Below are positions 1 through 21,591 of a stretch of DNA of 21,591 nt, one piece after another. Position numbers and translations under genes: made by a program. The stretch lies in the NCBI GenBank assembly GCA_977017575.1, contig CDRNVI010000195.1, forward strand, positions 1 through 21,591, read 5' to 3'. Source of the stretch: Paramoeba atlantica (lineage: Eukaryota > Protista > Discosea). How positions within the stretch are numbered: the first letter of the stretch is position 1; the number at the start of each line of letters is the position of its first letter. Under the pieces are notes generated by a model. It was not told where the DNA came from. It did not search any database and saw nothing but the letters and a program-made list of their open reading frames with translations.

Positions 1-3823
<3,823 letters not shown>

Positions 3824-3954
3824 AAAAGAGGGGGGAGAGAAACGGAGGAGAAGAATCATAAATTTTTTTGAAATAATAATTTGCTTTTTTGTTTTTGTTT
3901 TTTCTCTCTCTCTGGTTTGATTTTTGTTTTGTTTTGTTTCAAGCTCAAAGTTTT

Positions 3955-5830
3955 TTACTTTCTCAAAATTTGAGGAATCCAGTCTTCCCAGAAATAATGA
4001 GAGGTTATTTGTGTTTTTGAATGACTTGAAATTCGCTCCCTTATCTTCAAATTCTCAGACTTTTCTCTTTCTCTCTTCTCTCTTCTCCCTCCTCTCCTTC
4101 TCACAATATTCTTGACCATAAACTCCTTAATCTCTGATTCAGAAGTTTTCGGATTCTCGAACAAACGAACCTCCATCAATTGAGATCCACTCCTCAAACA
4201 AGACAAGAAAAGAAAATGTCCTGCATATGAGATCCAAATTGGAGGGCGTGGGTGATAGGGGTTGACACGTTGTGGTGATCCACTGATTTCTACATCTTGA
4301 CTTCTGTATGTGTGGTCTTTTATCCGGTGGAATATCCAGTCGTTGAATGGTCGCCATGATAGAATGAGCTATTTTATTTTATTGGAAAAGAGTCAATTAC
4401 TGAATTTTTGAAAGAGATAAATTTTTTAAAAGCGAAAGAGGTGGAAAAAACAAAATAGAAATGAAACCTTTGCAAGAGAGTTTCTCCAAAGCAGCAGAGG
4501 AGTTAAAATGGGAATTGGTGTATCTGACAAAAAATCCCTCTAATATTATAAAATCATGAATAAAAAAAGAGAGAGAAAAAGAAAATTCTTCTTTTTCAAA
4601 AAAAAAAACCTCTTCAAGACCACGAAGGAGTTCGAGAAGGGTCTGGTGATTATTATAATGATTCTCATTCAACAATTTAAACAATTGTGGCTCAATCCCC
4701 TTTCGATAATGTTGCGCCAAGAACCCAAGTTTTTGACTCATTTGATGTAAATATTTTGTGGCAGTTGTACCTTCTGATCCAACAATAATAACTCCCATTC
4801 TACTTGAACTGTCTTCAGTAAAATGTTGAGACATCACTCTCTCCCATGATCCTTTCACCCATGGACAGACTTCGAAAGGGAGATGAGAGAAAGAGGAACA
4901 AAAGGGGAGTTTGAGTTCTGTTTTGCCACTGGATTTACCTCCTCGAACTATACACCAATCTCTTTTCTCTTCTTGAACAGAAAAGAGAGAATTTTCGGGA
5001 AAGAGACAGAGTATTAAACTTCGCATTACAGCGCTAACCTGTGGAAAGGAGAGGAGGGGAGAGAATAGCAACAACAAAAATGTGAATTTTTCTTTTTAAG
5101 TTCTTGATGAGAGAATCAAAGAGAGAAAAGAAAAGAAAAATGAGAGAATATAAAAAAAGAGAACCTGCCAAGCCATATAAGAGAGAGTCTTATTATTGAT
5201 AATTGGTTCAAAACCCACCAATAGACGAGAGGCAGCAAGTTCTCTTCTCCATAAATCAACATTATCACTTCTTTCTTCTTGTAAAAGAATTACTCTTGCA
5301 TTTGGATTAAACCAAAGAAAGAAAGGAGCCAATGTGGATGCTAGTGGACCCACCAAAATATCATAAGAGAAGAAAGAAGAGAGAAGAGAGGGGAGCTCTT
5401 GAATAAAGAGGGTTTCGTATTCAGTTGGGGAAAAGATTTTGTATTTCCCCTTTTTGATTCGAGTTCGATTGTATAAAAAGAGATGAACAAGTTTTTCTAT
5501 TGTTGGATTTGGGATGGAAATAGAAGAAGAAGAAGGAGATTGGGATGAAGAAGATTGAGGAGAATGAGATGAAGAAGACGAACGAACAGAGCGAGAAGGA
5601 TCAAGATCAAGAATTGAATAATGAAGAGAAAGCTTCTCTCTCAAACCCTTCGGAAGATCAGGAACAAGATATACAATTGGTTGGTTCTTTGAAATATTTC
5701 TTTTGAAATGAAAAGAAGAAAATGTCTCTTTCCATGAATTTTGAATGAGCGCACATTTTCTAGTCTCTGCAATTCCAAGAGCGATTGGGGAGAGAGAGAG
5801 AAGGAGAAGAAGAGAGAAGAAAATTGCCAT
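3955..5830 (-). CDS. Sulfotransferase-like (P-loop fold) protein, ~526 aa, with N-terminal signal peptide or anchor and probably two tandem domains
   Basis: Exons 5830-5165, 5038-4610, 4539-4468 and 4368-3955 are all GT-AG, phase 0 and multiples of 3 (1581 nt including TAA). The N-terminus MAIFFSLLLLLSLSPIALG is hydrophobic. The C-terminal domain has VIIVGSEGTTATKYLHQMSQKLGF (PAPS-loop-like), then DFLSDTPIPILTPLLLWRNSLAKLILSWRPFNDWIFHR and QLMEVRLFE, resembling the Sulfotransfer_4 pattern (D-x-P...P-x-AKxILxxR...W). The N-terminal half has a similar block, YDILVGPLASTLAPFFLWFNPNARVILLQEE..DLW. The gene model is solid; the family call is by motif recognition only. Confidence 0.78.
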
Positions 5831-6339
5831 TTCCCTTTTGTTCTTTGCTCTTTTCAAATCAATAGAAATTGAAAGAAAAATGAAAAGAGACAGAGAAGCC
5901 CCACTGGAGAGAAAAGAGAGAAAAAACAACATTTTTTTAGCTCCGTATTTTTAGACTTCTCGTTTCTCTTTTTTCTCCTTTCTCGCTGGGTTTCCCTCTT
6001 TCTTTCTCCAAGATTGTGGTTCAACACGGTTTCTCTTCCATTTCCTCAATCTAAAAACTTGCTCTTTTTCTTTTTTTCTCTCTCCGATTTCTTTTCATTT
6101 TTTCCTCTTTCCTCTTCTTTTCTCTTTTGAACCAAAGAACAACAAGAGGAAAACAAACTCCTCAATCCAAATATTCTCTCTCTTTTTCCTAATTCTAATT
6201 TATTCAGAAAAAACAAAGGAAGAGAAAAAAGGAAAGAAGAAAGGGATATGATTGTATCTCCAAAAGCTACATCCCACACTTTAGGTTGTGAGAAAATATA
6301 TATAACAATAATATCCATCTCTCCAAAACCAAATTAAAA

Positions 6340-7650
6340 ATGACTGACTCATCTGTCGAAAAAGATCCAAAAATGCAAACGACCCCAATAAACATGGCGA
6401 CGCCGAAGATTCAAACTCGAAGACTGGGAAGCAAGACGCGGAACTCTTGAAAGATCTCTCTCCCATCTTTACCTTTGAGGACACCTTTGATGGCACGGAC
6501 CTGACTGATCAAACCTTCTCGATTCAACAAGACACTGATGGTGGCTGGCACCTTCTACCCTTTGAAATCCCCTCATCAAGTTCCTCATCAAGCTCCTTGT
6601 CAAGCTCCTCCTCAGACTCCTCTTCAAGCTCTCCCTCAGAGCCTTTGGACCTTGAAAATTCCATCAAGAACGCTATCAAGAAGCTCAACAAGACACCGAA
6701 AGACCTTCAGAGAGATCGAAAGCGCTGGCACAAATACCTCTTGGCAATCTACCAAAATTGGCAAATAAAGAAGTGGCCCAACAACTCTGAGGCTACTGAC
6801 CTCCTGGTGACCAAAATGAATGTCGGTGATATGTTCTCTGAAACAATTTTCGAATCGATCCAACATCTCTCTGACTTGAACTTAAGTCGAGCCTTCAATA
6901 CACCCCTTCGCAGTGAAGCAACAACTGTTACTTACTCTTTCAACACCAGCCACAATCTCACAGAACATCTTGTGCAATTTATGAACCTGGCAAGAAAAGA
7001 AAAGGGGAACCATGTGGATATCGAGACAGACACTGAGCTCCGAAACCTCTTCATCCAAAAGACAAAAACTTCTCCATTTGGGGATGCATTTCGCTTGATC
7101 CAAGACCAAAACCCAAACTCTAAAATTGCTTCTCTTGTTTCCTGGGCTGAATCATCGAATCAGTACCCTGTGATTGATAAACAACCATCTGGACCAAAGC
7201 TCCAGAGACTAAATCTGCAAGGAAAAGAAGATCAAGAAGCGTGCCCACACAAAACTTTGCCTTGGGTGTGGAAGAAATGATCATCCCACATTCAAATGCC
7301 CAAGAGTCACTGCAATGATTCATGAGCAAAACTACTATCACTCATACAGCCCAAATGACAAAGCAAAAGATCTGTGTCCACTCCATGGATACAATCTCAC
7401 TCACACTGATGAAGAATGCAAAACCTTGAACTCAATCTTCCCCTCCCACCAAGTGTGGTTGATATGACATACTGAAGGAAGATGCAGAAATGAAACAGCT
7501 CGATGGAGAGATGAGAGCCTTCATGGCACAATTCAAGAAATCTCCACCTAAAAGGAGGAAAATAAATCTGATGAAAATTATTCAAAGCCTGAATTTATTA
7601 AAAGAAAACCTGAGATAGCAGCAAATTCTCCTCCTTGTAACCAAAGTTAA
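6340..7650 (+). pseudogene. Frameshifted retroelement Gag/ORF1-like sequence with zinc knuckles
   Basis: The ATG at 6340 joins ORF 6447..7280 through a frameshift at the A-run near 6369-6373. A second shift near 7220-7250 leads to CLGCGRNDHPTFKC (CX2CX4HX4C, 7258-7299), then CPLHGYNLTHTDEEC (7375-7419) and a degraded third knuckle (KCG*Y..HTEGRC, ~7451-7487). The region has no introns and higher GC than its flanks. No protease or RT follows. Confidence 0.75.
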
Positions 7651-8351
7651 TGTTTTATGGCTGGTAGTACATTCTCTGATCTCAAGAACCTCTTTTTGTG
7701 TGCACAAGCAATGTGTGCTACTCTGAAAACACTTGGCTCTCTGCTCTATTTGTTTGATCTGACTCTTGATCTTCTCCAAGTCAATTCCCAATGTCTTTCA
7801 AGTCAACCCTTGGTCTCCTCCAAGTCAACCTTCTGTGAATCTAAATAAAAAACACCATTGATGATGTCATCAGAAAGTTTCTTGCTTTTTTGTGAGACTT
7901 CTGAGGACTGCTCTTCAGTTGTCCATTTAACATATTTCTGACACACCTTCTTTAGTTTGGACCAAAGTAAATGTGTTCATTGACAATGCTGGTTTTGATT
8001 TTTGGAACTCATGCTCACTTTTGATACCAAGATTGAACATTTGTTTTTTGAATTGAAACAACAACAGTGCCTTGTTTTTGTGAACAAACATTCTGGTGAG
8101 GTTTTTTCCTGGAGGTGCAATGGAGAAATCGATGACTCCTTGATAAAGACATCTATGCCTTTTTGATTTACTAAATAAAGGAGAATGAGTGCTGATGTGG
8201 GGCCACCAAATTCTGAAACAGTCCAATGTTCACTTTTCAAATTCTCAAATTGCACAACAACATTTTGATTGCTTTTATTATTCACTGTAAAAACTATCAT
8301 TTTACAGAGGCCAAGTTTCCTCACAACAACTGATTTTCTACTTTCAATCAT
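7640..8351 (-). pseudogene. Degraded intronless ORF of unknown function, convergent with the Gag-like ORF
   Basis: ORF 7977..8351 continues in frame past a TGA as THLLWSKLKKVCQKYVKWTTEEQSSEVSQKSKKLSDDIINGVFYLDSQKVDLEETKG. The inverted copy at 8559-8762 keeps the same frame, including a 3-nt indel. No family recognised. Confidence 0.4.
7763..7969. repeat. Left arm of a ~205-bp inverted repeat (pairs with 8559-8762)
   Basis: Manual alignment to the reverse complement of 8559-8762 shows about 20 substitutions plus a 3-nt indel (~90% identity). The spacer is 589 bp. Confidence 0.93.
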
Positions 8352-8558
8352 TTATCTTCTTTTTGAGTTGCCTATTTTTCCACCAATTGGTTTTTTGAGC
8401 AAGTGACTTTTCTTTTCTTTTTAACTTTGAGCACCAGTTTTCCCATTGGGTTTTTCTACTGCTCTGAGCCCATTGTATTGTATTCTTTGATTTCATCTAG
8501 TTGCTCAACTGAATTCAAAGAACCTCTGAGTCAGTCCAACACTCACATTTGACATGTC

Positions 8559-8762
8559 TACTTTGGTACAGACTAAAGAAGGTATGTCAGAAATATGTTG
8601 AATGGACAACTGAAGAGCAATCCTCAGAAGTCTTACGAAAAAGCAAGAAACTTCTTAATAACATCATCAATGGTGTTTTTTATTTAGATTCTTAGAAGGT
8701 CAACTTGGAGGAGACTAAGGGTTGACTTGAAGATTGGAAATTGATTTGAAGAAGATTAAGAG
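8559..8762. repeat. Right arm of the ~205-bp inverted repeat (pairs with 7763-7969)
   Basis: For example catcatcaatggtgttttttatttagattc here is the exact reverse complement of gaatctaaataaaaaacaccattgatgatg at ~7837-7866. Confidence 0.93.
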
Positions 8763-8875
8763 GGTATAGGCAGCAAAGTTGATAGTTGTTGTTGTTCAAA
8801 AGTTGCTTCAACTTTTCATCAACCCTTATCCTTTTAAAACAACACAAAAACAACACAATTCTTTTTATCAAAAAG

Positions 8876-8991
8876 AAAAAACTTTTTTTGAAACTTTGAT
8901 GACTAGATAATAAGAGTATTTTGAAGTGTTGAAAAAAACTTTTTTTGAGACTTTGATGACTAATAATAAGAGTTGTTTTAGAGTCATCAAA
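8876..8991. repeat. Two ~42-bp direct repeats plus an inverted copy of their TTTGATGACT core
   Basis: aaaaaactttttttga(a/g)actttgatgacta..taataagagt occurs at 8876-8917 and 8933-8973; agtcatcaaa occurs at 8982-8991. Confidence 0.8.
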
Positions 8992-9325
8992 AAAAAGAAA
9001 ATTGATTTTTAATTCATTCCAAAATTTTTTTTTTTATTTTTTCTGCTGCTTTCTCTTCTTCTTTTTTCCCTGCCACTTCTAATCTCAGGGGGAAGACAAT
9101 CAGCTTTTCAATTTCTCTCTTTCTTTTATTTTACCTCTAAAAAAAATGGATGAGACTCTTTTTTGTCTGTTGGGAATTTTAACCATTGGAGTTGGGATCA
9201 ACAGCTCTTTTTTTCAACACTTTTCAATTTCCAATTTAATTTTTCAAGAAAAAACAAAAAAATTTGTATTTTTGTTTTGGAGTTTTTTTAATTCCAACTC
9301 ATGAATATATTTTGTAGAGCTATAG

Positions 9326-11583
9326 ATGTCTTTAATTACATCAATCAAGAAAGGAGACTATGTTAAAATCTCCAACTGTGAGGATTATGGATATGTTCAG
9401 GATGCTGCCTACTTCCAGAATGAATACCATCTCACTCTTATCTGGGCAGAAATAGGAAGAAGAAAAGATGTATCATTTGTTGATATTTCTTTTGTTTCTT
9501 GTTTTGAACCAGTGCATGATCAAGGTATGCTTTGCCCAGAGTGCAAAATCCTAATGCAACAAATGGTTTGCTTTTTTTTTCTTTGATAATTTTAAAGTTT
9601 TCTTAAACTAAACTTCTTTTGAATAGATTAACAAAACAACAAGTGAAATATTTTTGATATGTCCATCATATCACTTGTGATTTGCTCTAAAATTTGATTG
9701 AACTATTTGCTTTCAGACTTCACAAAAACCTACACTTCAATCAAGCTTGGTGTTGATGATTGTGATGATACTTGGAACTGGGTACAAAGTTGGTGATCAA
9801 ACTCAACAGAGGTGGCCATACCAAAATGGGCTCAATTATTGATCCCTGAAGAGTACCATTCTCAAAAGTTTACATCAGTTATTTCATTGCTCAACTGGGT
9901 GATCAAGAAGTTGTCATCAGAAAGATGAAGGCAGGTGCCCTTGGAAAAAGTTCTTGGTATTTGATTCTCAAGCTTTTTTGAAAGGAACTCCTCCTCCCCA
10001 AGATGCAATTTGTACAGTTTATCAAGAGTATGATGGAGAGGGAAATCTTTCTTCAAAACCTGCTAACCATGCTCTCTAGAACCCAGGGGAACATAAAAAA
10101 CCTCAAGCAGTGTTAGCAATGAGAAAGGATTGGATTGAACACCTTGAAAAATCATAAAGTATCACCTTAAGTGAGACAATTCTAAGTTTTCAAGAAAAAC
10201 TAGTTGAGAGTGATCTCTCTCCATTAACAAAAGTGAATCTCATTTAACAAAATTCAAAGATGGGAAATACTTTGAAATATCAGAAACAAAAGGTTTTTTT
10301 TTCTTTTTTTTTCTTTTTTTCTTTTTTTTTTTTTCTTTTTTTTTTTCTTTTTTTTTTGTGAATCAATTTATATGGATTGATTGAATATTCTTCCAACAAT
10401 TGTTTCAAGAATCACAAATTTTTGATGTTGAGAAAATGGTTTTATATCCTTATACAGGAGAGGTCTCATTCAAATTTGGGTTTGAAGATTATTCCTTTGT
10501 CTTCATTGAACTCAGTTCAAAGATTCTAATTGCCAATTATGTAAAACCAAATATGAAAGAATTTTTCATCGATGGTGTTTTTAAATTATCCCCCTCTTTA
10601 CAACTGATAATTCTTGGTGTTCTCCTAAGAGGTTTGTTATCTTCCATTTGAAAAAAAAAATTTAATTTATTTTTATTTTTTTAATAATTCTTTTTCATGT
10701 TAGAGGATACAAAAGATAAAATACATGGAACAAATTTTTATCCTCTATCTTGTTTATTAATAAATCGAAAAACTGAATTTACCTATCTCCAGTGGTTTGC
10801 TGACCTCAAATATATTGGGTTGGAATTGAATGATTGTTCTATTTTAACTGATATGGAGTTTGGTATTAGAAATACAGGTTGATTATTTGAATAACAATTA
10901 TTTTCTTTTTTTACTTTTATTGATTTATTTTGTTTTAATAGGAAAAGTAATGTAGGAGGAGTTTGAATGGAAGTTATGTTACTTCCATGTGATCATGAAT
11001 GCTAAGGACAAGTTAAAAGCCTTTGAAGTTCTGAAAAAAATTTATTTTTTTTATCTTGGGGTATTGAAAGAAATGAAAGAACAAAAAGATGAGAAACAAA
11101 CAGAAAATGTATGGAAAAATTTTCAAATTGCTATTACTTATTCAAAAGAAAAGCTTTGGTTTGGATTTTGATTTATTTTATTTTTTTTTTTTTCTTTTGA
11201 AAAATGAAACAAGTGTATAAAGTAAAATTTATATTTTATTTTTTGTTTTTAGGCTTGAATATATGGAGAAATGGATAATTCTTCATTTGTCATAATAGAT
11301 TGGAGGAAAAATAAATAATTTGATTGAGAGATTCAATTGATACCTGAAAGAAACTCTTTTTTGAGGTCAAACATACTCCAATGCTACAACAATTGTTGAC
11401 ATCTTTAGTTGATATTTTTCAATTTTAGAAACTGTTCTGGTGCCCTATACATTGCAAAAAACTAATAAATTTTTTCAAAAGATTTACAAATCAAATCAAT
11501 TAAGGTGATAATTCTATCTGAAAGAAACGAAAAACATCAAAGCATAAGGTGTGCTAAAAAAGAAATCTTTTGTTTTTCTTTGA
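9326..11583 (+). mobile_element. Mutator/MULE-family DDE transposase pseudogene with spliceosomal introns
   Basis: Motifs lie in canonical order: EFFIDGVFKLSPSLQL (D at 10571), YPLSCLLINRKTEFTYLQWF, ILTDMEFGIRN (D at 10850), KLCYFH (CxxH, 10977-10988) and INNLIERFN (E at 11326). GT-AG introns at 10293-10409, 10632-10703, 10878-10941 and ~11159-11252 join these in phase; another starts at 9566. There are many in-frame stops. The exon structure of 9326-10290 is uncertain and no TIRs were found. Confidence 0.88.
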
Positions 11584-12605
11584 TTTTCTCAATTCTTTCT
11601 TTTGATTGTATGTGGAAAAGTGAAATGATTGATTCGGTGGTGTTGTTTTTAATAGTTTGTGAATAAAAAAAAAAGAAAAGAATAACAAACTAAAACATTC
11701 ACTTGAAATATGAATAAAAAAGTTCATTGGTAAATTAAACAATCTATCATATATCTTTCCAAACCTTTCAACTCTTCTTTTCTTTCAATTTCTTTCTTTT
11801 CTCTTTCTGTTTTTCTATTTTTTTCTCACTCGCTGCTTTCTTTTCCAAAAAAAAAAAAAAAATCCAATTCCCAATCAAATGTTGCCACATCAGCCATTTT
11901 CTTTTTCTTTTTTTGGTTTTTTTTTTAGTTTTTTGTTTTGAACAGTTTTTTTTTTTCTTTTTTGTTTGTGAGAAAGAAAGAAAAAAAGAAAAAGAAAGAG
12001 AAAGAGAAAGATTCAACAAAAAAGAGAAAAAAACAAAAAAAAATAAAGAAAAAGGATTGTATGACCAAAATTAATTGAAAAGATCCAAATGCAAACCAAA
12101 AATAAGATTGAAGAAGAAAAAAAAAAAAAGAATTGAATTTGTATTGGTCCTATTTTGATGGAAGCTTGAACAACTAAGAAAAAATAAGAATATTTGAATT
12201 CTTTTTCACCTCTTTGCCAAATTTCAAGAAAAAAAATTGCATTCAAAATAAAAATCAGTTTTTTGGCAAAAAAGTTTTTCTTTTTTGTTTTTTGTTTTTG
12301 TTTGATTTTTGTGTTTGGTTTTTGTTTTTTGAAAGATGAGAAAAATAGACTTTTAGAAATTAAGAAATTTTTGGTTTTTTCAATGTATCACTTTTATATT
12401 AAGAAAGAGAAATGAAAAACCAATCTATTTTTCTCAAAGTGAGAAAGATAAAAGAATTCACAAGGTTTATCTAATGATCCAATTCTTTGAGATTTTCTTT
12501 CTTTTCTTTTTTCCTCTTCTTTTTCTTGTTTCTTTTTTTCTTTTTCTTTTTTTCTTTTTTGTTTCTTTTTTCTTCTTTTTCTTTCATCTCTTTTTCTTTT
12601 TTACT
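11443..12605 (+). repeat. Segmental duplication copy 1 (MULE C-terminal exon plus 3' flank)
   Basis: Colinear with 19684-20847, from ccctatacattgcaaaaaa to tttttact (1163 versus 1164 bp). Confidence 0.95.
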
Positions 12606-13054
12606 TTTTTTCACACATTTTTTTTTTTTTTTCTTTTTTTTTTTTTCTTTTTTTTTTTCTTTTTCTCTTTTTTCTTTTTTTCTTTTTTTTTCTTCTCTTT
12701 TTCTTTTTCTTTTTTGAAAAAATTTAGAAAAATGAAAAATTAATTCTTTTTATTCTTAGAATGAACAATAAAAAAAATCAAAAGGAATTCATTTTCTTTT
12801 GTATTGAGTGGAAACAGGATTTCTTTTTTTTCAATGGTTTTTTGATTTCTTTTTTGATTTCTTTTTTTCTTTTTCTCTCATTTTCTTTTTTTTTTTTCTT
12901 TTTATTTTTTTTTATTTCTTTTTTATTTCAAGATTTTGAAAGCTTAAAAATATGAAAGTTTGTTTTTTGTTGTTTCTTTTGAGTTTTAATCTTTTTGTTG
13001 ATATTTGGAATTTTTTTTGTTTTATTTTTTTTTATTTTAATTGTTTTTTTTTTT

Positions 13055-15178
13055 AGAAATTGTTCTTTATCATTGAAAATGACATCGTCTTATTTCCTGT
13101 GATTTATTGTATCCAAAGAATCCTATTTTTCTCTCAGATAAAGCACAATGTGATGTGATGGGTTAGAGGTTCAGTTTCTTTTTTCTAACATTTTTTTAAA
13201 CAATATTTAAATAATTAAAGTTTTAATGTTTTTTCCTTCAGAAATTGTTCTTTATCATTGAAAATTACATCGTCTTATTCCTTGTGATTTACTGTATTCA
13301 AAGAAATCTATTTTTCTCTCAAATAAAACACAATGATGTGATGTGAGGGGTTCAGTTTTTTTTTTCTAATATTTTTCTAAACAATTTAAATAATTTTATT
13401 TTATTATTTTTTCCTTCAGAAATTGTTCTTTATCATTGAAAATAATATCATCTTATTCCTTGTGATTTATTATATTCAAAGAAGCCTATTTTTCTCAGAT
13501 AAAGCACCTGATATGATATGAGAGGTTCAGTTTTTTTTTTTTTGATATTTTTTTAAATAATAACTAATTACTTTTTTTTATTGTTTTTTCCTTCAGAAAC
13601 TATTCTTTATCATTGAAAATACTATTGTCTTATTCCTTGTGATTTACTGTATCCAAAGAATCCTATTTTTCTCAAATAAAATACAATGATGTGATGTGAG
13701 GTTCAGTTTCTTTTTTTTGATATTTTTTTAAATAATAACTAATTACTTTTTTTTATTGTTTTTTCCTTTAGAAACTGTTCTTTATCATTGAAAATCACAT
13801 TGTCTTATTTCCTATGATTTACTCTCTCCAAAGAAGCTTATTTTTCTCAGATAAGCACCTGATGTGATGTGAGGGGTTCAGTTTCTTTTTTTTAATATTT
13901 TTTTAAATAGTAATTAATTACTTTTTTTTATTGTTTTTTTCTTTAGAGAGTATTTTTTATCATTGAAAATTACATCATCTTATTCTTTGTGATTTATTGT
14001 ATCCAAAGAATTCTATTTTTCTTTCAAATAAAATACAATGATGTGATGTTGGGTTGGCGCCCGTAATTTAGTCGTAAATTCGACTATGTCCAACCCCGGA
14101 GGGGCGAGTTCAAATCCTAGTTTTTCGATATTATAGAAAATTTTTCTGGTGCTGTAGAGTGATTTGATTGGAGTGAGGAGCTTTTGAAGAAGTGTGAAAA
14201 TCAGAACAGGTTACATCTCAGCCCTGTCTGCTAAAAAGTTGAGGGTAAATTCCCTTGGAAGGAACTTTGGATTATTTTCCCTTCTGATGTGCATCCTCCA
14301 GCCTGAACTTGCAGAAGTTCTAAAGTTCAGCATAAAGACCGACTGAACTAAGCTGAAGTTTAAAACTTCACCTCTCGTTAGAGGTTAAAAACAAACATAA
14401 TTTAATGTAATTCAAATGGCTTAGATTAAGAACTACTAATTGAATAAAGTCTGCCTCAAAAAGAAAAAAAAACAATGATGTGATGTGAGTGATTTAGTTT
14501 CTTTTTTCTGATATTTTTTTAAACAATATTTAAATAATTAAAGTTTTAATGTTTTTTTCTTTTAGAGAATGTTCTTTATCATTGAAAATAACATTGTCTT
14601 ATTCCTTGTGATTTATTGTATCTAAAGAAGTTTATTTTTCTCTCAGATAAGCATTTGATGTGATGTGAAGGGTTCAATTTTTTTTTTTCCAATATTTTTT
14701 TAAACAATAACTAATTATTTTTTTTTATTATTTTTTCCTTCAGAGAATGTTCTTTATCATTGAAAATTACATTGTCTTATTCCTTGTGATTTATTGTATT
14801 CAAAGAATTCTATTTTTCTCAAATAAAGCACCTAATGTGATATGAGAAGTTTAGTTTCTTTTTTCTGATATTTTTTTAAACAATAACTAATTACTTTTTT
14901 TTATTGTTTTTTCCTTCAGAAATTATTCTTTATTATTGAAAATGATATTGTCTTATTCTTTGTGATTTACTGTATCCAAAGAAGCTTATTTTTCTCAGAT
15001 AAAGTACTTGATGTGATATGAGGTTCAGTTTTTTTTTTTCAATATTTTTTTAAACAATAACTAATTACTTTTTTTTATTATTTTTTCCTTCAGAAACTGT
15101 TCTTTATCATTAAAAATCACATTGTCTTATTTCCTATGATTTACTCTCTCTAAAGAAGCCTATTTTTCTCAAATAAAA
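13055..15178. repeat. Subtelomeric satellite, ~175-185-bp monomer, 10 units (last one truncated)
   Basis: Units begin aga(a/g)a.tgttctttatcattgaaaat at ~13055, 13240, 13418, 13595, 13770, 13945, 14564, 14742, 14918 and 15092. Unit 6 is interrupted by the SINE. Confidence 0.95.
14050..14471 (+). mobile_element. SINE-like retroposon, 422 bp
   Basis: It is flanked by a perfect 15-bp target-site duplication, acaatgatgtgatgt (14035-14049 and 14472-14486). A B-box-like GAGTTCAAATCC lies at 14106-14117, and AATAAA precedes an A-rich tail (aaaaagaaaaaaaa). It has no ORF and keeps its CpGs, unlike the surrounding satellite. The A box is weak. Confidence 0.88.
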
Positions 15179-15599
15179 TTAGGGTTTAGGGCCTAATTAC
15201 TTCGTTTTGAACTACTTTTTTTCACAATTCAGAAAATCGAGACTGGTAGAAAGATGCGCCTCATTTTTGTCTTCCTAATGGCATATTTTTTTTTAAAATC
15301 CGAATATGTCACAAAAAGTTATAGACAGTTTACGAAGAGGTCTTATGTATGAAATTCACATATAATGATAGGACTTTAAAGTGGCACCCTACATATTGAG
15401 GAAACAAGTGAGCTGGGACTAATTTTTTTTGATAACATAATAAAAAAAACTATTTTCTAAAACTTGGACCAGCCAGATTTTTGATTTTGTCTCATAGAAT
15501 AAAAATAATTGAGAAAACATTTATATGATTTTTACATACAAACATATAATTTTAGTTTCCTCCCTACATTATCAGGTCATATATAAAATTTTTCATGGT

Positions 15600-16070
15600 T
15601 TTCCTTAAACATAGATTAATTTCATGTTTTTACACTACTCTATTATTTTTATTTTTCATTTTTTAATTTTGAGAGATTTTTATAGAGTCTAAAAATATGA
15701 GTATTTTTTCTATGTATTTTACATATAAAAAAACATCAATGAATTGGTACCTACATAATAGGGAAATATATAAAATTTTTCAAAGTTTTCTTTAAACATA
15801 GATTAATTTCATGTTTTTACACTACTTTATTATTTTTATTTTTCATTTTTTAATATTGAGAGATTTTTACAGCATCCTTTTATAAACATACTTTTGGAAC
15901 TTTTGGCTCTGTTTCTCTATTATAACAAATAATATTATTGCTCCCTACATAAAAATAAAATAGATAAATCTCAAATTGATTTTCTTTATTTTAAGATTCA
16001 TTTAATGTTTTTACACTACTCTATTACTTTTATTTTTCATTTTTTGATATTGAGAGATTTTTATAGACCT
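15600..16070. repeat. Three ~190-200-bp internal repeats in the module (mirrored at ~18545-19015)
   Basis: atgtttttacactact.tatta.ttttatttttcatttttt.at.ttgagagatttt recurs at ~15619, ~15807 and ~16006. Confidence 0.85.
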
Positions 16071-16644
16071 TTTATGTAAGCATACTTTTGAGAAAATACT
16101 TTTTGTAATGTGTTAATAAAATCATGTTAGAAATCAAAAAATTGATTTAAGATTGATAATATGTTTAAAAAAACCTTTATTGAATAGGATTTATTTTCTA
16201 TCATTCATTTTTCATCATTTGAAGCTTTTTAATTGATGTGAAAAAATTGACTAAATAAGGAAATTTACATATTTAAAAGTACTCTATCTTTCTATGAGGA
16301 TGGATTCAGGAAGAAAAAATTAAAATTTGAAGAGAAGCCAACATGTTCTTGAATTGGGTCATATAAATATTTTTTCAATTCCTTCATTTGATAGAGATAA
16401 ATGATCAACAAGTAGGGTAAATGGGTATATTTTTTGACTTAGTGAATTTTTTTTTGATTTTTTGGAGTGAAATTTTGTCTCTCCAATTTTATTGAAAATT
16501 TGATAGGATGGATAAAATACAAAGGGGAATCAGCACATATGATTTTCATTTTGAACAAACATCACATCACTGAGATATAGAGGGTTGTTGAATTTTTCAA
16601 CTTTGTAATATAAAAACATTGTTTTTTCTAAGTATTTAACAAAT

Positions 16645-16710
16645 AGCTTGATGGCTTAGTGGTAAAAACCTTCTTTTTGATGAAAGTTGTGAGTTCAATT
16701 CTCTCAAAAG
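16645..16710 (+). pseudogene. Degenerate tRNA-like (Pol III type-2 promoter) relic, copy 1
   Basis: A box TGGCTTAGTGG (16652-16662) and B box GAGTTCAATTC (16691-16701) lie at tRNA-like spacing, followed by a long T-run. The stems do not fold into a full cloverleaf, so no anticodon is assigned. Confidence 0.55.
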
Positions 16711-16899
16711 TTCTTTTTTTTTCTTTTTTTTTTCTTTCCTTCTTGTTCAAGAAATCATTCTTTTACTCTTTGTTTGAGTTTTTTTTATTTGTAAAGATTC
16801 ATATTTTTTTTGTTTCATTGAAATTGAAGTCTCTCCCTCTGAGAAACATGATAGAAAAATGAATTTTTTTTTTTAAAATTCTTTGAAAATGAAGAATAT

Positions 16900-18123
16900 C
16901 TCAGAGGATTGTTAGTGAAATAAGTTGATATTTTGATTTTAAATAGTTTATATATTGTAGATATATGTATTTTTTATTCCATCAAAATCTAAAGTCATTT
17001 GACTGAAATCGACAATTTTTTCAATGATAGAGTATTGAAAAAAAATAATAAAAAATAAAAAATCCCTATCATTGAGAGGTAAAATGATATTTTTGAAAAA
17101 TAAAATATAATAATAAAAGATAAAGCTTAGTTTTGTGAATAAAATGAGGCTATTTTGAATAAAATTGAAGAAGGTGACATTGAGATATTCAAGAAATACA
17201 ATTTTTGTTTGAATGGACTTAGAAAATTTTTAAAAAAAATCAACAAAATATGGAGATTGATAATAACTCAGAGGAAAGATAGTAAAATAAGCTATAAAGT
17301 TGATAGAATATAGTTGACTAAATATAAATATGTGTATTTTTTATTTCATCAAAATCTAAGTTGGTATGACTGACAATGATAGAGTATTTAATGATAAAGC
17401 CAATGTAAAAATCATAGAAAAATGAAAAGCACCTATCATTGAAAGATAAAATGAGATTATTGAAAAAAGAAACTATAAAATAAAGATAAAACTTAGTTTT
17501 GTGAATAAAATAAGGCTATTTTGAATAAAATTGAAAAACTTAACACTGAGATATTCAAGTAATACAATTTTTGTTTAAAAGGACTTAAAAAATTTTTGAA
17601 AAAAATCAACAAAATATGAAGATGATCAATAACTCAGAGGAAAGATATTGAAATAAGCTATAAAGTTGATAAAATATAGTCAACTAAATATAGATATATG
17701 TATTTTTTGTCACATCAAAATCTGAGTTGGTATGACTGACAATGATAGAGTATTCAATGATAAAGCTTATATAAAAATTATAGAAAAAAGAAAAGCACCT
17801 ATTATTGAAAGATAAAATAAGATTATTGAAAAACAAAACTAGATGAGAAAGATAAAGCTTTGTTTTGTGAATAAAATGAGGCTATTGTGAATAAAATTGA
17901 AGAAGGTGACACTGAAATATTCAAGAAATACAATTTTTGTTTAAATGGACTTAAAAAATTTTCAAAAAAAATCAACAAAATATGAAGATGATCAATAACT
18001 TAGAAGAAAGATAGTAAAATAAGCTATAAAGCTAATAGAATATAGTCAACTAAATGTAGATATATGTATTTTTTATTATATCAAAATTTGAGTTGGTATG
18101 ACTAAGAATAATAGAGTATTTAA
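16900..18123. repeat. Second satellite, ~366-bp unit, ~3.3 copies
   Basis: The marker ctcagagga (cttagaaga in the last copy) occurs at 16900, 17267, 17633 and 17999. The array is cut at 18123 by the second module. Confidence 0.92.
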
Positions 18124-19687
18124 TTAGGGTTTAGGGTCTAATTACTTTGTTTTGAATCACTTTTTTTCACAATTCGGAAAATCAAGACTGGTAGAAAGAT
18201 GCGCCTCATTTTTGTCTTCCTAATGGCATATTTTTTTTTAAAATCCGAATATGTCACAAAAAGTTATAGGCAGTTTACGAAGAGGTCTTATGTATGAAAT
18301 TCACATATAATGATAGGACTTTAAAGTGGCACTCTACATATTGAGGAAACAAGTGAGCTGGGACTCATTTTTTTTGATAACATAATAAAAAAAACTATTT
18401 TCTAAAACTTGGACCAGCCAGATTTTTGATTTTGTCTCATAGAACAAAAATAATTGAGAAAACATTTATATGATTTTTACATACAAACATATAATTTTAG
18501 TCTCCTCCCTACATTATCAGGTCATATATAAAATTTTTCATAGTTTTCCTTAAACATAGATTAATTTCATGTTTTTACACTACTCTATTACTTTCATTTC
18601 TCATTTTTTCATTTTGAGAGATTTTTATAGAGTCTAAAAATATGAGTATTTTTTCTATGTATTTTACATATAAAAAAACATCAATGAATTGGTACCTACA
18701 TAAGAGGGGAATATATAAAATTTTTCAAAGTTTTCTTTAAACATAGATTAACTTCATGTTTTTACACTACCTTATTATTTTTATTTTTCATTTTTTAATA
18801 TTGAGAGATTTTTACAGCATCCTTTTGTAAACATACTTTTGGGACTTTTGGCTCTGTTTCCCTATTATAACAAATAATATTATTGCTCCCTACATAAAAA
18901 CAAAATAAATAAATCTCAAATTGATTTTCTTTATTTTAAGATTCATTTGATGTTTTTACACTACTCTATTACTTTTATTTTTCATTTTTTGATATGGAGA
19001 GATTTTTATAGACCTTTTATGTAAGCATACTTTTGAGAAAATACTTTTTGTAATGTGTTAATAAAATCATGTCAGAAATCAAAAAATTGATTTAAGGTTA
19101 ATAATATGTTTAAAAAAACCTTTATTGAATAGGATTTATCTTCTATCATTCATTTTTCATCATTTGGAGCTTTTTAATTGATGCGAAAAAATTGACTAAA
19201 TAAGGAAATTTACATATTTGAAAGTACTCTATCTTTCTATGAGGATGGATTCAGGAAGAAAAAATTAAAATTTGAAGAGAAGTTAACATGTTTTTGAATT
19301 GGATTATATAAATATTTTTTCAATTCCTTCATTTGATAGAGATAAATGATCAACAAGTAGGGTAAATGGGTATATTTTTTGACTTAGTGAAAATTTTTTT
19401 TGATTTTTTGGAGTGAAATTTTGTCTCTCCAATTTTATTGAAAATTTGATAGGATGGATAAAATACAAAGGGAAATCAGCACATATGATTTTCATTTTGA
19501 ACAAACATCACATCACTGAGATATAGAGAGTTGTTGAATTTTTCAACTTTGTAATATAAAAACATTGTTTTTTCTAAGTATTTAACAAATAACCTGATGG
19601 TTTAGTGGTAAAAACTTTCTTTTTGATGAAAGTTATGAGTTCAATTTTCTCAAAAGTTCTTTTTTTTTTTTTTTTTTTTCTTTCCCT
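18124..19687. repeat. 1.56-kb non-coding module, copy 2, starting with TTAGGGTTTAGGG
   Basis: The telomeric tract is at 18124-18136, followed by tctaattac. It differs from copy 1 mostly by transitions. Confidence 0.93.
19591..19655 (+). pseudogene. Degenerate tRNA-like relic, copy 2
   Basis: TGGTTTAGTGG (19598-19608) and GAGTTCAATTTTC (from 19637), followed by a T-run. Confidence 0.5.
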
Positions 19688-20847
19688 ATACATTGCAAAA
19701 AATTAACGAATTTTTTCAAAAGATTTATGAATCGAATCGATTAAGGTAATGATTCTATCCAAAAAAAATGAAAAACGTCAAAGCATAAGGTGTGCTAAAA
19801 AAGAAACCTTTTGTTTTTCTTTGATTTTCTCAATTCTTTCTTTTGATTGTGTGTGGAAAAGTGAAATGATTAATCTGGTGGTGTTGTTTTTAATAGTTTG
19901 TGAATAAAGAAAAAAAAAAAGAATAATAAACTAAAACATTCACTTGAAATATGGAATAAAAAAGTTCATTGGTAAATCAAACAATCTATTATGTATCTTT
20001 CCAAACTTTTCAACTCTTCTTTTCTTTCAATTTCTTTCTTTTTTCTTTCTGTTTTTCTGTTTTTTTTTCACCCACTGCTTTTTTTTCCGAAAAAGAAAAA
20101 AAAAATCCAATTCCCAATCAAATGTTGCCACATCATCCATTTTCTTTTTCTTTTTTTGGTTTTTTTTTAGTTTTTTGTTTTGAACAGTTTTTTTTTTTCT
20201 TTTTTGTTTGTGAGAAAGAAAGAAAAAAAGAAAAAAAAAGAAAAAGAGAAAGATTCAACAAAAAAGAGAAAAAAACAAAAAAAAACAAAGAAAAAGGATT
20301 GTATGACCAAAATTGATTGAAAAAATCCAAATACAAACCAAAAATAAGATTAAAGAAAAAAAAAAGAAAAAAAATTGAATTTGTATTGGTCCTATCTTGA
20401 TGGAAGCTTGAACAACTAAGAAAAAACAAGAACATTTGAATTCTTTTTCACCTCCTTGCCAAATTTTAAGAAAAAAAATCATACCCAAAATAAAAATCGG
20501 TTTTTCAGCAAAAAAGTTTTTCTTTTTTGTTTTTTGTTTTTGTTTGATTTTTGTGTTTGGTTTTTGTTTTTTGAAAGATGAAAAAAATAGACTTTTAGAA
20601 ATCAAGAGATTTTTGGTTTTTTTAATGTATTACTTTTATATTAAGAAAGAAAAATGAAAAACCAATCTATTTTTCTCAAAGTGAGAAAGATAAGAGAATT
20701 CACAAGGTTTATCCAGTGATCCAATTCTTTGAGGTTTTCTTTTTTTTCTTTTTTCCTCTTCTTTTTTTTGTTTCTTTTTTTCTTTTTTTCTTTTTCTTTT
20801 TCGTTTCTTTTTTCTTCTTTTTCCTTCATCTCTTTTTCTTTTTTACT
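19684..20847 (+). repeat. Segmental duplication copy 2 (MULE 3' end), truncated by the telomeric array
   Basis: Matches 11443-12605; homology stops at ...tttttact, directly before aattaggggtttaggg. Confidence 0.95.
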
Positions 20848-20849
20848 AA

Positions 20850-21324
20850 TTAGGGGTTTAGGGTTTAGGGTTTAGGGTTTAGGGTTTAGGGTTTAGGGTT
20901 TAGGGTTTAGGGTTTAGGGTTTAGGGTTTAGGGTTTAGGGTTTAGGGTTTAGGGTTTAGGGTTTAGGGTTTAGGGTTTAGGGTTTAGGGTTTAGGGTTTA
21001 GGGTTTAGGGTTTAGGGTTTAGGGTTTAGGGTTTAGGGTTTAGGGTTTAGGGTTTAGGGTTTAGGGTTTAGGGTTTAGGGTTTAGGGTTTAGGGTTTAGG
21101 GTTTAGGGTTTAGGGTTTAGGGTTTAGGGTTTAGGGTTTAGGGTTTAGGGTTTAGGGTTTAGGGTTTAGGGTTTAGGGTTTAGGGTTTAGGGTTTAGGGT
21201 TTAGGGTTTAGGGTTTAGGGTTTAGGGTTTAGGGTTTAGGGTTTAGGGTTTAGGGTTTAGGGTTTAGGGTTTAGGGTTTAGGGTTTAGGGTTTAGGGTTT
21301 AGGGTTTAGGGTTTAGGGTTTAGG
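20850..21324 (+). repeat. Plant-type telomeric repeat array (TTTAGGG)n, internal in this window
   Basis: One variant TTAGGGG (20850-20856), 66 perfect TTTAGGG units (20857-21318, 462 bp) and a partial TTTAGG (21319-21324). The G-rich strand is on +, as expected for a right-hand chromosome end. Confidence 0.99.
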
Positions 21325-21591
21325 ATGCAAATCTCCAAGAACTGCGAAACCGTTTGAGGCAGGGATCTCTGAAAAAGGATAAATCACTTTTTCCTTCCCA
21401 GAAACACCAGTGGGGACACTCTTATTACAGTCATTTTCCTTTGTTTTTTCCTCTTCATCTTTCCCTTCTTCTATCTCCTCTTTCCCTTTCTCCTCTTCCC
21501 TACTTTTCTTTTTCTTCTTCTTTGCTGGCTTCTTGGTTACAGGTAATGGTTTGGTCCCAGTAGGAGTTGGTTCCTTCTCCTCAACTGTCTC
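21313..21591 (-). CDS. 5'-partial open reading frame running into the telomeric array; possible retroelement ORF1/Gag-like fragment or host exon
   Basis: 92 codons without a stop from the window edge: ETVEEKEPTPTGTKPLPVTKKPAKKKKKKSREEEKGKEEIEEGKDEEEKTKENDCNKSVPTGVSGKEKVIYPFSEIPASNGFAVLGDLHPKP*. The stop codon comes from the telomeric repeat itself. It is missing from the ORF track because it has no early start codon. Confidence 0.5.
   Translation of the reverse strand, partial: ETVEEKEPTPTGTKPLPVTKKPAKKKKKKSREEEKGKEEIEEGKDEEEKTKENDCNKSVPTGVSGKEKVIYPFSEIPASNGFAVLGDLHPKP

Follow-up and report, generated by a model that had tools for sequence, protein, structure and literature searches.

The window, i.e., the whole 21,591-nt stretch of DNA analyzed here, begins with about 11 kb of continuous single-copy DNA, and the last 8 kb of the contig consists of stacked DNA blocks, several of which are joined via one common short telomere-like sequence. 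The features on which the analysis is based are as follows (J1 to J4 denote junctions at which a broken sequence passes into this telomere-like sequence).

11443 to 12605, plus strand: proximal look-alike and probable source of the block at 19686-20847 (global alignment), situated immediately downstream of a decayed MULE-like transposase remnant
13035 to 15176, no strand assigned: 176-bp satellite, interrupted by a SINE and cut at J1 (TRF rows 13035-14049 and 14476-15177; family D7)
14051 to 14472, plus strand: tRNA-derived, poly(A)-tailed 422-bp SINE within this satellite, with 94-96% matches on contigs L002, L003, L004, L005, L006, and L008
15177 to 15191, plus strand: seed 1, AATTAGGGTTTAGGG, G-strand, the first 15 nt of module copy 1
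15177 to 16739, plus strand: module copy 1, 1563 nt, non-coding, with three internal repeats of ~190 bp (families D8, D11, D13) and a T-rich end, ...CTTTCC
16645 to 16713, plus strand: degenerate tRNA-like remnant near the distal module end, followed by a T run (Rfam tRNA, 19.6 bits, E 2.5, below gathering)
16740 to 18121, no strand assigned: 218-bp linker and 366-bp satellite (3.2 units, 16958-18121; TRF 16958-18124; families D9, D10), cut at J2
18122 to 18136, plus strand: seed 2, AATTAGGGTTTAGGG, heading module copy 2
18122 to 19685, plus strand: module copy 2, 97% identical to copy 1
19686 to 20847, plus strand: copy of 11443-12605 that overlaps the module end by 2 nt (CC) and is cut at ...ACT
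20848 to 21324, plus strand: telomere tract, AATTAGGGG followed by 67 perfect TTTAGGG units (TRF, 100% matches)
21325 to 21591, minus strand: L1-like LINE fragment, multi-copy, from the region just upstream of the endonuclease domain (28 protein homologues)

At J1, the 176-bp satellite reads ...CAAATAAA and the expected next base is G; instead, AATTAGGGTTTAGGG follows. Similarly, at J2 the 366-bp satellite reads ...TATTTAAT with GATAAAG expected, and the identical 15-mer stands in its place. J3 is located on an independent contig (L002), where the 15-nt start of the module directly follows a LINE that breaks off within its RT domain, while at J4 the block 19686-20847 is cut at ...TTTACT, a position from which its source continues as TTTTTTCAC, and passes into the long telomere tract. 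The first bases are AATT at all four seed junctions, with overlaps with the broken partner of 1, 3, 4, and 0 nt. The partner at J4 supplies none of AATTAGGG, yet the long telomere begins with AATTAGGG, and this shared start ties the 15-mer of the module to de novo telomere addition. The sequence AATTAGGG is present three times in the whole window, every time at one of these junctions (J1, J2, J4), the chance expectation of a 14-mer telomere pattern in the window being 0.02; two further entries into the module at exactly the same base would be expected by chance in about 1 in 1500 cases each. In all telomeric tracts of the window the G-strand lies on the plus strand, and the DNA beyond the last tract (21325-21591) is non-telomeric. 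The original prediction that three different sequences are cut mid-unit, continue as G-strand telomeric repeat, and are followed by more non-telomeric DNA was thus borne out at every position it named. Two of its details were corrected: the satellite described as 180-bp has a period of 176 bp (TRF period 175-176), and the first two tracts, said to be of equal length, are indeed identical but comprise 15 nt including AATT, not 13.

The homology of module copies 1 and 2 runs precisely from AATT to ...CTTTCC (16739 and 19685, respectively), with 97% identity over the aligned 1563 nt, and both window copies have the same polarity. The third copy (L002 12565-14023) shares the 15-nt start, here next to yet another broken and unrelated sequence, which supports the earlier view that the tract acts as part of the module; its homology stops at module position 1460 (versus 1563), giving a different distal end. 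The proximal partners of the module start are therefore three independent sequences, i.e., the 176-bp satellite, the 366-bp satellite, and a LINE, and no copy without the telomere tract was seen among the three. Read on the minus strand, every copy (3/3) ends ...CCCTAAACCCTAATT, a short reverse-complement telomeric repeat at the 3' end. The distal module ends join non-telomeric DNA directly, with no telomeric repeats on that side, and the proximal side carries no repeats beyond the module's own 15-mer. Copy 2 differs from the L002 copy at 24 sites and from copy 1 at 42 sites, a separate comparison of the two window copies giving 49; since about 90% of the changes between copies are transitions, clock-like dating of the copies is unsafe.

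The longest ORF of the module has 67 aa, the module ORFs were not called by gene callers, and homology search with a 66-aa module ORF yielded no protein homologue; exact look-ups of 14 short ORFs gave a host gene at 5099-5932 as the sole match. No hammerhead or other ribozyme was detected with Rfam between 13000 and 20000 (both strands, E up to 5), and ARAGORN found no tRNA at the degenerate remnant. Inspection of the sequence led us to reject Helitron ends, TIR, and TSD for the module, the flanks on the two sides of each of the three copies being unrelated. A terminal 7-bp hairpin (AATTAGG/CCTAATT) was weak and without compensating changes, and a relationship of the module to either satellite or to the proximal 13 kb was discarded after comparison. 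Ten further contigs (158 kb, TE-rich) reached via the LINE-fragment proteins contained one module copy (that on L002) and none on the other nine; telomere tracts were absent from all ten, and their gene tables listed no PLE. A scan of JGI metagenomes with a conserved 41-nt module word gave no match.

The block 19686-20847 differs from 11443-12605 by about 6% substitutions (94% identity), 65 of 66 being transitions; positions 20017-20067 were masked in searches and scripted comparisons. The segment 11443-12605 was not found in the 158 kb of other TE-rich loci. An earlier description of the block as a MULE duplicate was right about the duplication, while the MULE label refers to a decayed transposase-like frame upstream (10385-11168) only, without confirmation by Pfam. 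The terminal LINE fragment breaks off at ...GATTTGCAT(C), a point at which intact copies proceed with AAATAGAA; the 1-nt overlap of the fragment with the telomere is uninformative. Homologues of the fragment lie in LINE contexts carrying Exo_endo_phos, RVT_1, zf-RVT, and RNase H. Copies of this family are 92-96% alike and reside with TSDs in non-telomeric DNA, and the SINE shows TSDs as well; the LINE 3' ends read ...GAACCTT(A)n in 8/8 cases. The family is the sole abundant RT-bearing one near the module. However, since it ends in plain poly(A) (n = 8, with TSDs), we rejected it as the module's autonomous partner, and a search for a partner sharing the telomeric end, as had been suggested, yielded none in the loci compared. 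The possibility that the distal part is a TERRA-like retro-copy inside a LINE was also discarded, because no second LINE fragment occurs in the window, whose proximal 11 kb is uninterrupted and single-copy.

Taken together, we propose, on the basis of sequence comparison and at roughly even confidence, that one chromosome end was repeatedly broken and repaired by telomere seeding combined with break-induced, template-switching copying. The breaks would have hit repeats or sequence of low complexity, namely the two satellites (176 and 366 bp), a T-rich stretch, and, on L002, the LINE. The bare 3' end would gain a telomere seed always starting AATTAGGG, its AATT overlapping the end by 0-4 nt, which telomerase might make, e.g., if it takes up a default position on the RNA bases lying 3' to its template. 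A seed of about one pass (15 nt, AATTAGGGTTTAGGG) would then pair with its identical internal counterpart at the head of a subtelomeric module already present and prime break-induced DNA synthesis; this synthesis would copy the module, drop off in its terminal T-rich run, and restart via the 2-nt overlap on the nearby 11443-12605, while a seed extended further by telomerase would yield the 470-bp telomere. From these comparisons we infer that the copying was DNA-templated and that the events took place in this order. Sequences similar to the two most distal blocks are found further inward in the window, at 3 kb (module copy 1) and 8 kb (11443-12605), and break-induced replication with template switching gains from this, since local donors are predicted by template switching and not by random RNA capture. 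The switch itself sits in a T-rich run. The absence of coding capacity, ribozyme, TIR, and TSD from the module also speaks for this reading. Break-induced replication with template switching had been named earlier as the main alternative; the nearby look-alikes and the CC overlap strengthen it, whereas the invariant tract length (15 nt, 3/3) weighs against it. Furthermore, 13-15 nt is short for homology-driven invasion, and since yeast-type seed-guided replication gives variable internal tracts, an extra assumption is needed, either a single-pass seed or flap trimming. Copy 2 is also nearer to the L002 copy than to copy 1 in cis, which is explicable only if copy 1 mutated faster, and the AATT default start draws its support from one long telomere.

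The fixed start can also be read as the physical end of a template. The module would then derive, as cDNA, from a minus-strand RNA that is non-coding, has a fixed 3' end, ...CCCUAAACCCUAAUU, and is copied onto bare broken ends by LINE ORF2p, a putative Penelope-like RT, or telomerase, with 0-4 nt pairing to the last bases of the RNA; since this RNA ends in a telomere seed, the module would bring its own. We regard this explanation as unlikely, although several observations agree with it. A start that stays invariant next to three partners of unrelated sequence, with overlaps of 0-4 nt, is what priming at a template end would give, incomplete copying would produce variable distal ends (that of the L002 copy resembles a 5' truncation), and the greater likeness of copy 2 to the L002 copy would be expected from a common master. 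In addition, a G-strand seed followed by the module has the polarity of telomere- or end-primed reverse transcription, an arrangement described for EN-deficient Penelope-like elements (PMC8557442), and the LINE family, with its similar copies and TSDs, provides an active source of RT. The antisense LINE beyond the 470-bp telomere has the polarity of telomere-primed LINE cDNA and would mark another instance, in the same organism, of an end extended by RT priming. In a rarer version, the 15-mer and the module would together be read-through cDNA of a telomerase-RNA-like template. Nevertheless, the module has no hammerhead ribozyme, ORF, or partner element sharing its end, and no more than one extra copy was present in the 158 kb of TE-rich DNA; it appears as decayed AT-rich DNA with an antisense tRNA remnant and no obvious transcription unit. 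Moreover, the block after copy 2 stems from a site 8 kb distant in cis, an origin not predicted by RNA capture, and the identical AATT start on the 470-bp telomere requires a second assumption. The earlier idea of a non-autonomous telomere-targeting element or mobile end-cap is supported in part. The fixed start, the variable distal end, the constant polarity of the window pair, and the lack of TIR and TSD fit it, and a new telomere-seeking mobile element is possible, but the tract end, distal ends, and polarity are predicted equally by seed-guided break-induced replication with template switching. Its retroelement component is not supported, as there is no ORF above 67 aa, protein homologue, or ribozyme, and "telomere-targeting" does not describe a module whose 15-mer joins non-telomeric DNA directly.

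An origin of the stack, or at least of its LINE tail, from chimeric or mis-joined noisy long reads seems very improbable, and an artefact producing J1, J2, and J4 together more improbable still. The contig of a second, independent assembly of the same organism ends at window position 11362, which leaves the distal 10 kb without a second witness; the long-read data are noisy, with homopolymer indels between the two assemblies, and merely 267 bp of a multi-copy repeat lies beyond a perfect 470-bp telomere before the window ends. On the other hand, a junction of seed and module is also found on L002, an independent contig, where the partner is another one, and the 49 differing sites indicate that the window copies are not one collapsed copy. 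For the telomere-LINE junction taken alone, the chance of an artefact comes close to even, although its breakpoint lies 2-3 nt from the site of a SINE insertion in another LINE copy, which a random chimera would not lead one to expect. The terminal 267 bp of antisense LINE behind a perfect telomere may represent either a later fusion, an RT-primed addition, or a chimeric contig-end read. As for an ordinary insertion of a DNA transposon, Helitron, or SINE-like retroposon that starts by chance with a telomere-like 15-mer, the defined start in three copies, a minus strand ending in CTAA then T (resembling a Helitron 3' end), and the T-rich tail behind a tRNA-like piece would fit. However, the other end starts GGAAAG, not TC, and together with the unrelated flanks and the missing TSD and TIR this means that no copy resembles an insertion into continuous DNA; we give this explanation hardly any credence.

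Yeast X-Y' subtelomeres carry internal TG1-3 tracts between Y' units, which encode a helicase, are amplified by BIR in telomerase-deficient survivors, and are thought to start spreading when a short telomere pairs with an internal tract. Here too, the subtelomeric unit begins on its proximal side with a short G-strand tract that lies internally and follows an unrelated sequence that has been truncated (J1, J2, J3); units are stacked head to tail endward, and nearby chromosomal donors and CC microhomology accompany the switch. In contrast to yeast, the tract is far shorter, has a non-telomeric AATT start, and shows none of the length variation between events expected of Y'-like spread; the unit is non-coding, and its proximal partners are broken unrelated sequences, not X elements. 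In ciliate developmental healing, the telomerases of Tetrahymena and Euplotes use default template positioning and a fixed starting register. The tracts described here likewise share their first letters irrespective of the end that was broken and show minimal or no complementarity to it, but the start contains four non-repeat bases (AATT), and three of the four junctions lead into the module. In human subtelomeric duplicon patchworks, interstitial (TTAGGG)n is present at some block boundaries. Blocks of mixed origin at chromosome ends, G-strand tracts at some boundaries, and end-joining-type overlaps elsewhere are common to both, whereas the present scale is a few kb and one boundary sequence was re-used three times.

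Among retroelements, SART/TRAS, MoTeR, and HeT-A/TART insert into or onto telomere arrays, have the element 3' tail at the junction, and include an RT-encoding member; the module has neither distal telomere repeats nor a coding member, and the LINE is poly(A)-tailed. TPRT-type insertion of a SINE or LINE is likewise at odds with the unrelated flanks at 3/3 module copies and the lack of a TSD, whereas TSDs do accompany LINE and SINE copies in this genome. Morrish et al. (2002, 2007) reportedly observed endonuclease-independent LINE-1 retrotransposition at breaks and dysfunctional telomeres. The end of the contig resembles such events in that a G-strand telomere is followed by an antisense LINE lacking its 3' part, with no TSD, but it was seen once, with 267 bp visible and a 1-nt overlap. 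The EN-deficient Athena/Coprina PLEs have reverse-complement telomeric repeats at their 3' end with an adjoining hammerhead motif (Gladyshev and Arkhipova 2007 via PMC8557442), and EN-deficient PLEs are attached to telomeric G-overhangs, with repeats re-added on the distal, 5'-truncated side. The module shares with them the location at a chromosome end and a reverse-complement telomeric repeat at its presumed 3' end facing the centromere. Unlike them, it lacks an RT ORF, a hammerhead ribozyme, and any autonomous relative that we could find, and it is joined to non-telomeric broken DNA, with no distal telomeric repeats added.

If breakage, seeding, and template-switching copying are the correct explanation, the contig is a base-resolution record of one chromosome end rebuilt several times in an AT-rich protist with TTTAGGG telomeres. 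In that case, de novo telomeres in this organism would always start AATTAGGG, and its telomerase RNA would read CCCUAAACCCUAAUU around the template; either result would show how telomerase engages non-telomeric ends outside ciliates. The land-plant telomerase RNA paper gives no template flank that bears on the AATT start (PMC6765143). If, instead, the module is RNA-templated, it would represent a unit with neither coding capacity nor ribozyme that supplies a telomere seed itself and mends broken ends through reverse transcription; this would matter for the long-standing question of how end maintenance is divided between telomerase and retroelements. As for the host, the best named relatives of the neighboring thiolase-RPE65 gene come from marine protist transcriptomes, and the G+C content of P. 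pemaquidensis (43.3%) is higher than that of the window (PMC5601477).

The window consists of AT-rich eukaryotic DNA (G+C 20-40%), its telomeric G-strand repeats (TTTAGGG) are all on the + strand, and the chance expectation for a 14-mer telomere pattern in it is 0.02 occurrences. Four DNA runs of a single study contain 40-48% of the sampled words, and the assembly may derive from them. From the 176-bp satellite onwards, the chromosome end is laid out as follows.

Segments of the chromosome end (window positions)
13035-15176: 176-bp satellite, with a 422-bp SINE at 14051-14472
15177-16739: AATTAGGGTTTAGGG and module copy 1, after the 176-bp satellite
16740-18121: 218-bp linker and 366-bp satellite, after module copy 1
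18122-19685: the same 15-mer as in copy 1 and module copy 2, after the 366-bp satellite
19686-20847: copy of 11443-12605, after module copy 2
20848-21324: AATTAGGGG and 67 perfect TTTAGGG units, after the copy of 11443-12605
From there to the window end: 267 bp of non-telomeric DNA, after the telomere tract

The original prediction had described segments that are cut mid-unit and continue as telomeric tract. Earlier units of the 176-bp satellite give G after ATAAA and those of the 366-bp satellite give GATAAAG after TTTAAT; since both switch to the 15-mer where earlier units read on differently, this observation was confirmed, and it holds as well for the break before the long telomere. More non-telomeric DNA was likewise found beyond each tract, namely the two modules and the 267 bp after the 67-unit telomere. 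At position 20848 the source reads ACT followed by TTTTTT, whereas the copy reads ACT followed by AATTAGGGG; therefore, AATT belongs to the added DNA, whether a module or a 470-bp telomere comes after it. Elsewhere in the window, the sequence AATTAGGG is absent.

A third module copy was retrieved from an independent ENA long-read assembly of the same organism. For the final 89 minus-strand codons of the window, 28 homologues turned up in it, and their contexts revealed an L1-like LINE of about 6.6 kb with endonuclease, RT, zf-RVT, and RNase H domains. Among the contigs bearing these homologues, locus L002 carries the module at 12565-14023 (96% identity), starting with AATTAGAGTTTAGGG immediately behind a LINE cut inside its RT domain: intact LINEs read CCTGACCAATT and then TCAACC, whereas L002 reads CCTGACCAATT and then AGAGTTTAGGGCC. 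No further module copy or telomere tract was present on nine more contigs (158 kb in total, including L002 and L001, the locus that reaches left of the window), so that copy number, orientation, and tract-length statistics are based on three copies. The same assembly contains the host ORF 5099-5932, and its contig ctg3235l matches window 1-11362 at 99.84%, with differences that are almost all homopolymer indels and denser near the contig end; as it stops about 80 bp short of the 11443 boundary, it cannot corroborate the distal 10 kb.

Junctions of the AATT-headed seed
15177: partner 176-bp satellite, overlap with AATT 1 nt
18122: partner 366-bp satellite, overlap with AATT 3 nt
L002: partner LINE, inside RT, overlap with AATT 4 nt
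20848: partner copy of 11443-12605, leading to the long telomere, overlap with AATT 0 nt

The probability that a 1.5-kb unit is entered at the same given base in two further events is about 1 in 1500 for each. Chance cannot account for a module start that is constant behind three unrelated broken partners, which implicates the telomere-like 15-mer in the mechanism. This invariant AATT-headed 15-nt seed, re-used at least three times, is the one unusual trait of the locus.

The described sharing of a 1.56-kb module after the first two tracts stood, as a match of 97% identity from AATT on, with the tract being 15 nt including AATT. Homology between copies 1 and 2 begins exactly at AATT and ends at ...CTTTCC, with 49 of 1563 sites differing, 44 of them by transitions. 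The predicted variable distal end was also found: in L002 homology is lost at module position 1460, not at ...CTTTCC, and G+C-richer unrelated sequence follows for 200 bp to the contig end. This replacement (L002 14024-14227) is unique among the fetched loci and opens with a small palindrome, TTTCCAATTAGGAAA, with AATTAGG again inside. As there are only two window copies and one event is enough for their common ...CTTTCC, that end does not argue for a discrete unit. The DNA flanking the module on its two sides is unrelated in every copy, and thus no copy is a simple insertion; TIRs are absent from the module. Its ORFs do not exceed 67 aa, and exact and homology look-ups of the module ORFs were both blank. 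Rfam returned no ribozyme at E up to 5, the sole match being a tRNA-like remnant below threshold at 16645-16713, with a T run behind it. Three internal repeats of about 190 bp are present, and neither of the two satellites nor the window's proximal 13 kb is related to the module. Its first 22 nt (15177-15198, 18122-18143, and L002 12565-12586) form a small palindrome, AATTAGG, an 8-nt loop, and CCTAATT, in which the piece after the seed resembles the reverse complement of the seed start. As a hairpin it is weak (7 bp, -4.5 kcal/mol), and single changes weaken it further, to a G-U pair in L002 and by one lost pair in copy 2, with no compensating changes in either.

Break-induced replication with template switching, originally named as the main alternative to a mobile element, is now favoured, at about an even chance. 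A chromosome break would gain a seed, which would pair with the identical internal seed heading an existing module and prime break-induced synthesis, with the template switching by microhomology. Counted for this are the same AATT start on the true long telomere, look-alikes of both distal blocks within the window, 3 and 8 kb to the proximal side, the fact that 11443-12605 is not a common repeat, the passage from module end to the 11443 copy through a 2-nt (CC) overlap within a T-rich run, and the absence of ribozyme, ORF, and partner element. The constant tract, exactly 15 nt in all three copies as predicted, is harder to accommodate, since seed-guided copying is expected to vary unless there was a single template pass or 3' flap trimming. 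It would suit better a minus-strand RNA ending ...CCCUAAACCCUAAUU that a reverse transcriptase copied onto bare 3' ends, as would the different distal end of the third copy, which resembles 5' truncation, and the closeness of copy 2 to L002 (24 differences) rather than to copy 1 (42). The changes private to one copy (34 in copy 1, 8 in copy 2, and 16 in L002) are about 90% transitions; rates may therefore be uneven, and copy distances are unsafe for dating. In EN-deficient Penelope-like elements, reverse-complement telomeric repeats stand next to a hammerhead ribozyme (PMC8557442), an arrangement like that of the RNA-based explanation. The module lacks three of the four defining Athena/Coprina features, nor does it show those of telomere-specific non-LTR elements. 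The anticipated autonomous partner with the same end did not emerge in the 158 kb of contigs covered, the nearby LINE family having plain poly(A) ends with TSDs. We consider RNA copying unlikely, at about half the weight of break-induced replication. The locus is accordingly filed as a subtelomeric patchwork of a known kind, built by healing and template switching; in mechanism it resembles healed, re-extended subtelomeres in general and most closely yeast Y', likewise a subtelomeric unit headed by an internal tract.

Behind the telomere, the window closes with 267 bp of antisense LINE that stem from the stretch immediately upstream of the endonuclease domain; the break falls at ...GATTTGCAT(C), a point from which intact copies go on AAATAGAA. 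A healed LINE end would not have this polarity, which fits either extension of a telomere 3' end on LINE RNA or the joining of the telomere to a broken LINE. As the perfect 67-unit tract is followed by no more than 267 bp and the underlying data are noisy long reads, a chimeric read has to be taken seriously, and we rate an artefact at this junction as even or slightly less likely than that. Against a random chimera, the cut (window 21324-21333) falls 2-3 nt from a SINE site with a 16-nt TSD in another LINE copy (L004 10262-10277), a near-coincidence that may mean that the LINE sequence is preferentially nicked here.

The LINE family is young, with copies 88-96% alike (L004 8242-15357 and L003 5290-13281; also L005, L006, L007, and L002) and poly(A) tails and TSDs, e.g., of 21 nt in L006. 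The SINE family is tRNA-derived, 422 bp long with a poly(A) tail, and its copies (window 14051-14472; L002 6166-6587 and 11583-12004; L004 5269-5690 and 10279-10699; also L003, L005, L006, and L008) are 93-96% alike and sit in the 176-bp satellite and, repeatedly, in LINE copies.

The window opens (1-735) with a 735-bp array of purines only, built on AGAAAGAGA (periods 9, 24, and 33), and its pyrimidine counterpart, at 12493-12715 and 20735-20844, adjoins two break points. Between the duplicates (11443-12605 versus 19686-20847, and the module copies), 90-98% of differences are transitions, in both directions and mostly outside CpG, a bias that fits a putative methylation-driven or repeat-induced C-to-T decay of this genome's repeats. 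In the gene-bearing part of the window, a 196-nt inverted repeat (7797-7992 and 8536-8731; 87% complementary, 543-nt spacer) forms a foldback or MITE-like structure. Left of the window, L001 12779-15737 holds adjacent thiolase and RPE65/carotenoid-oxygenase ORFs on the same strand; among their named relatives, the best are fused thiolase-RPE65 proteins in marine protist transcriptomes, with 60% identity across 40% of the query.
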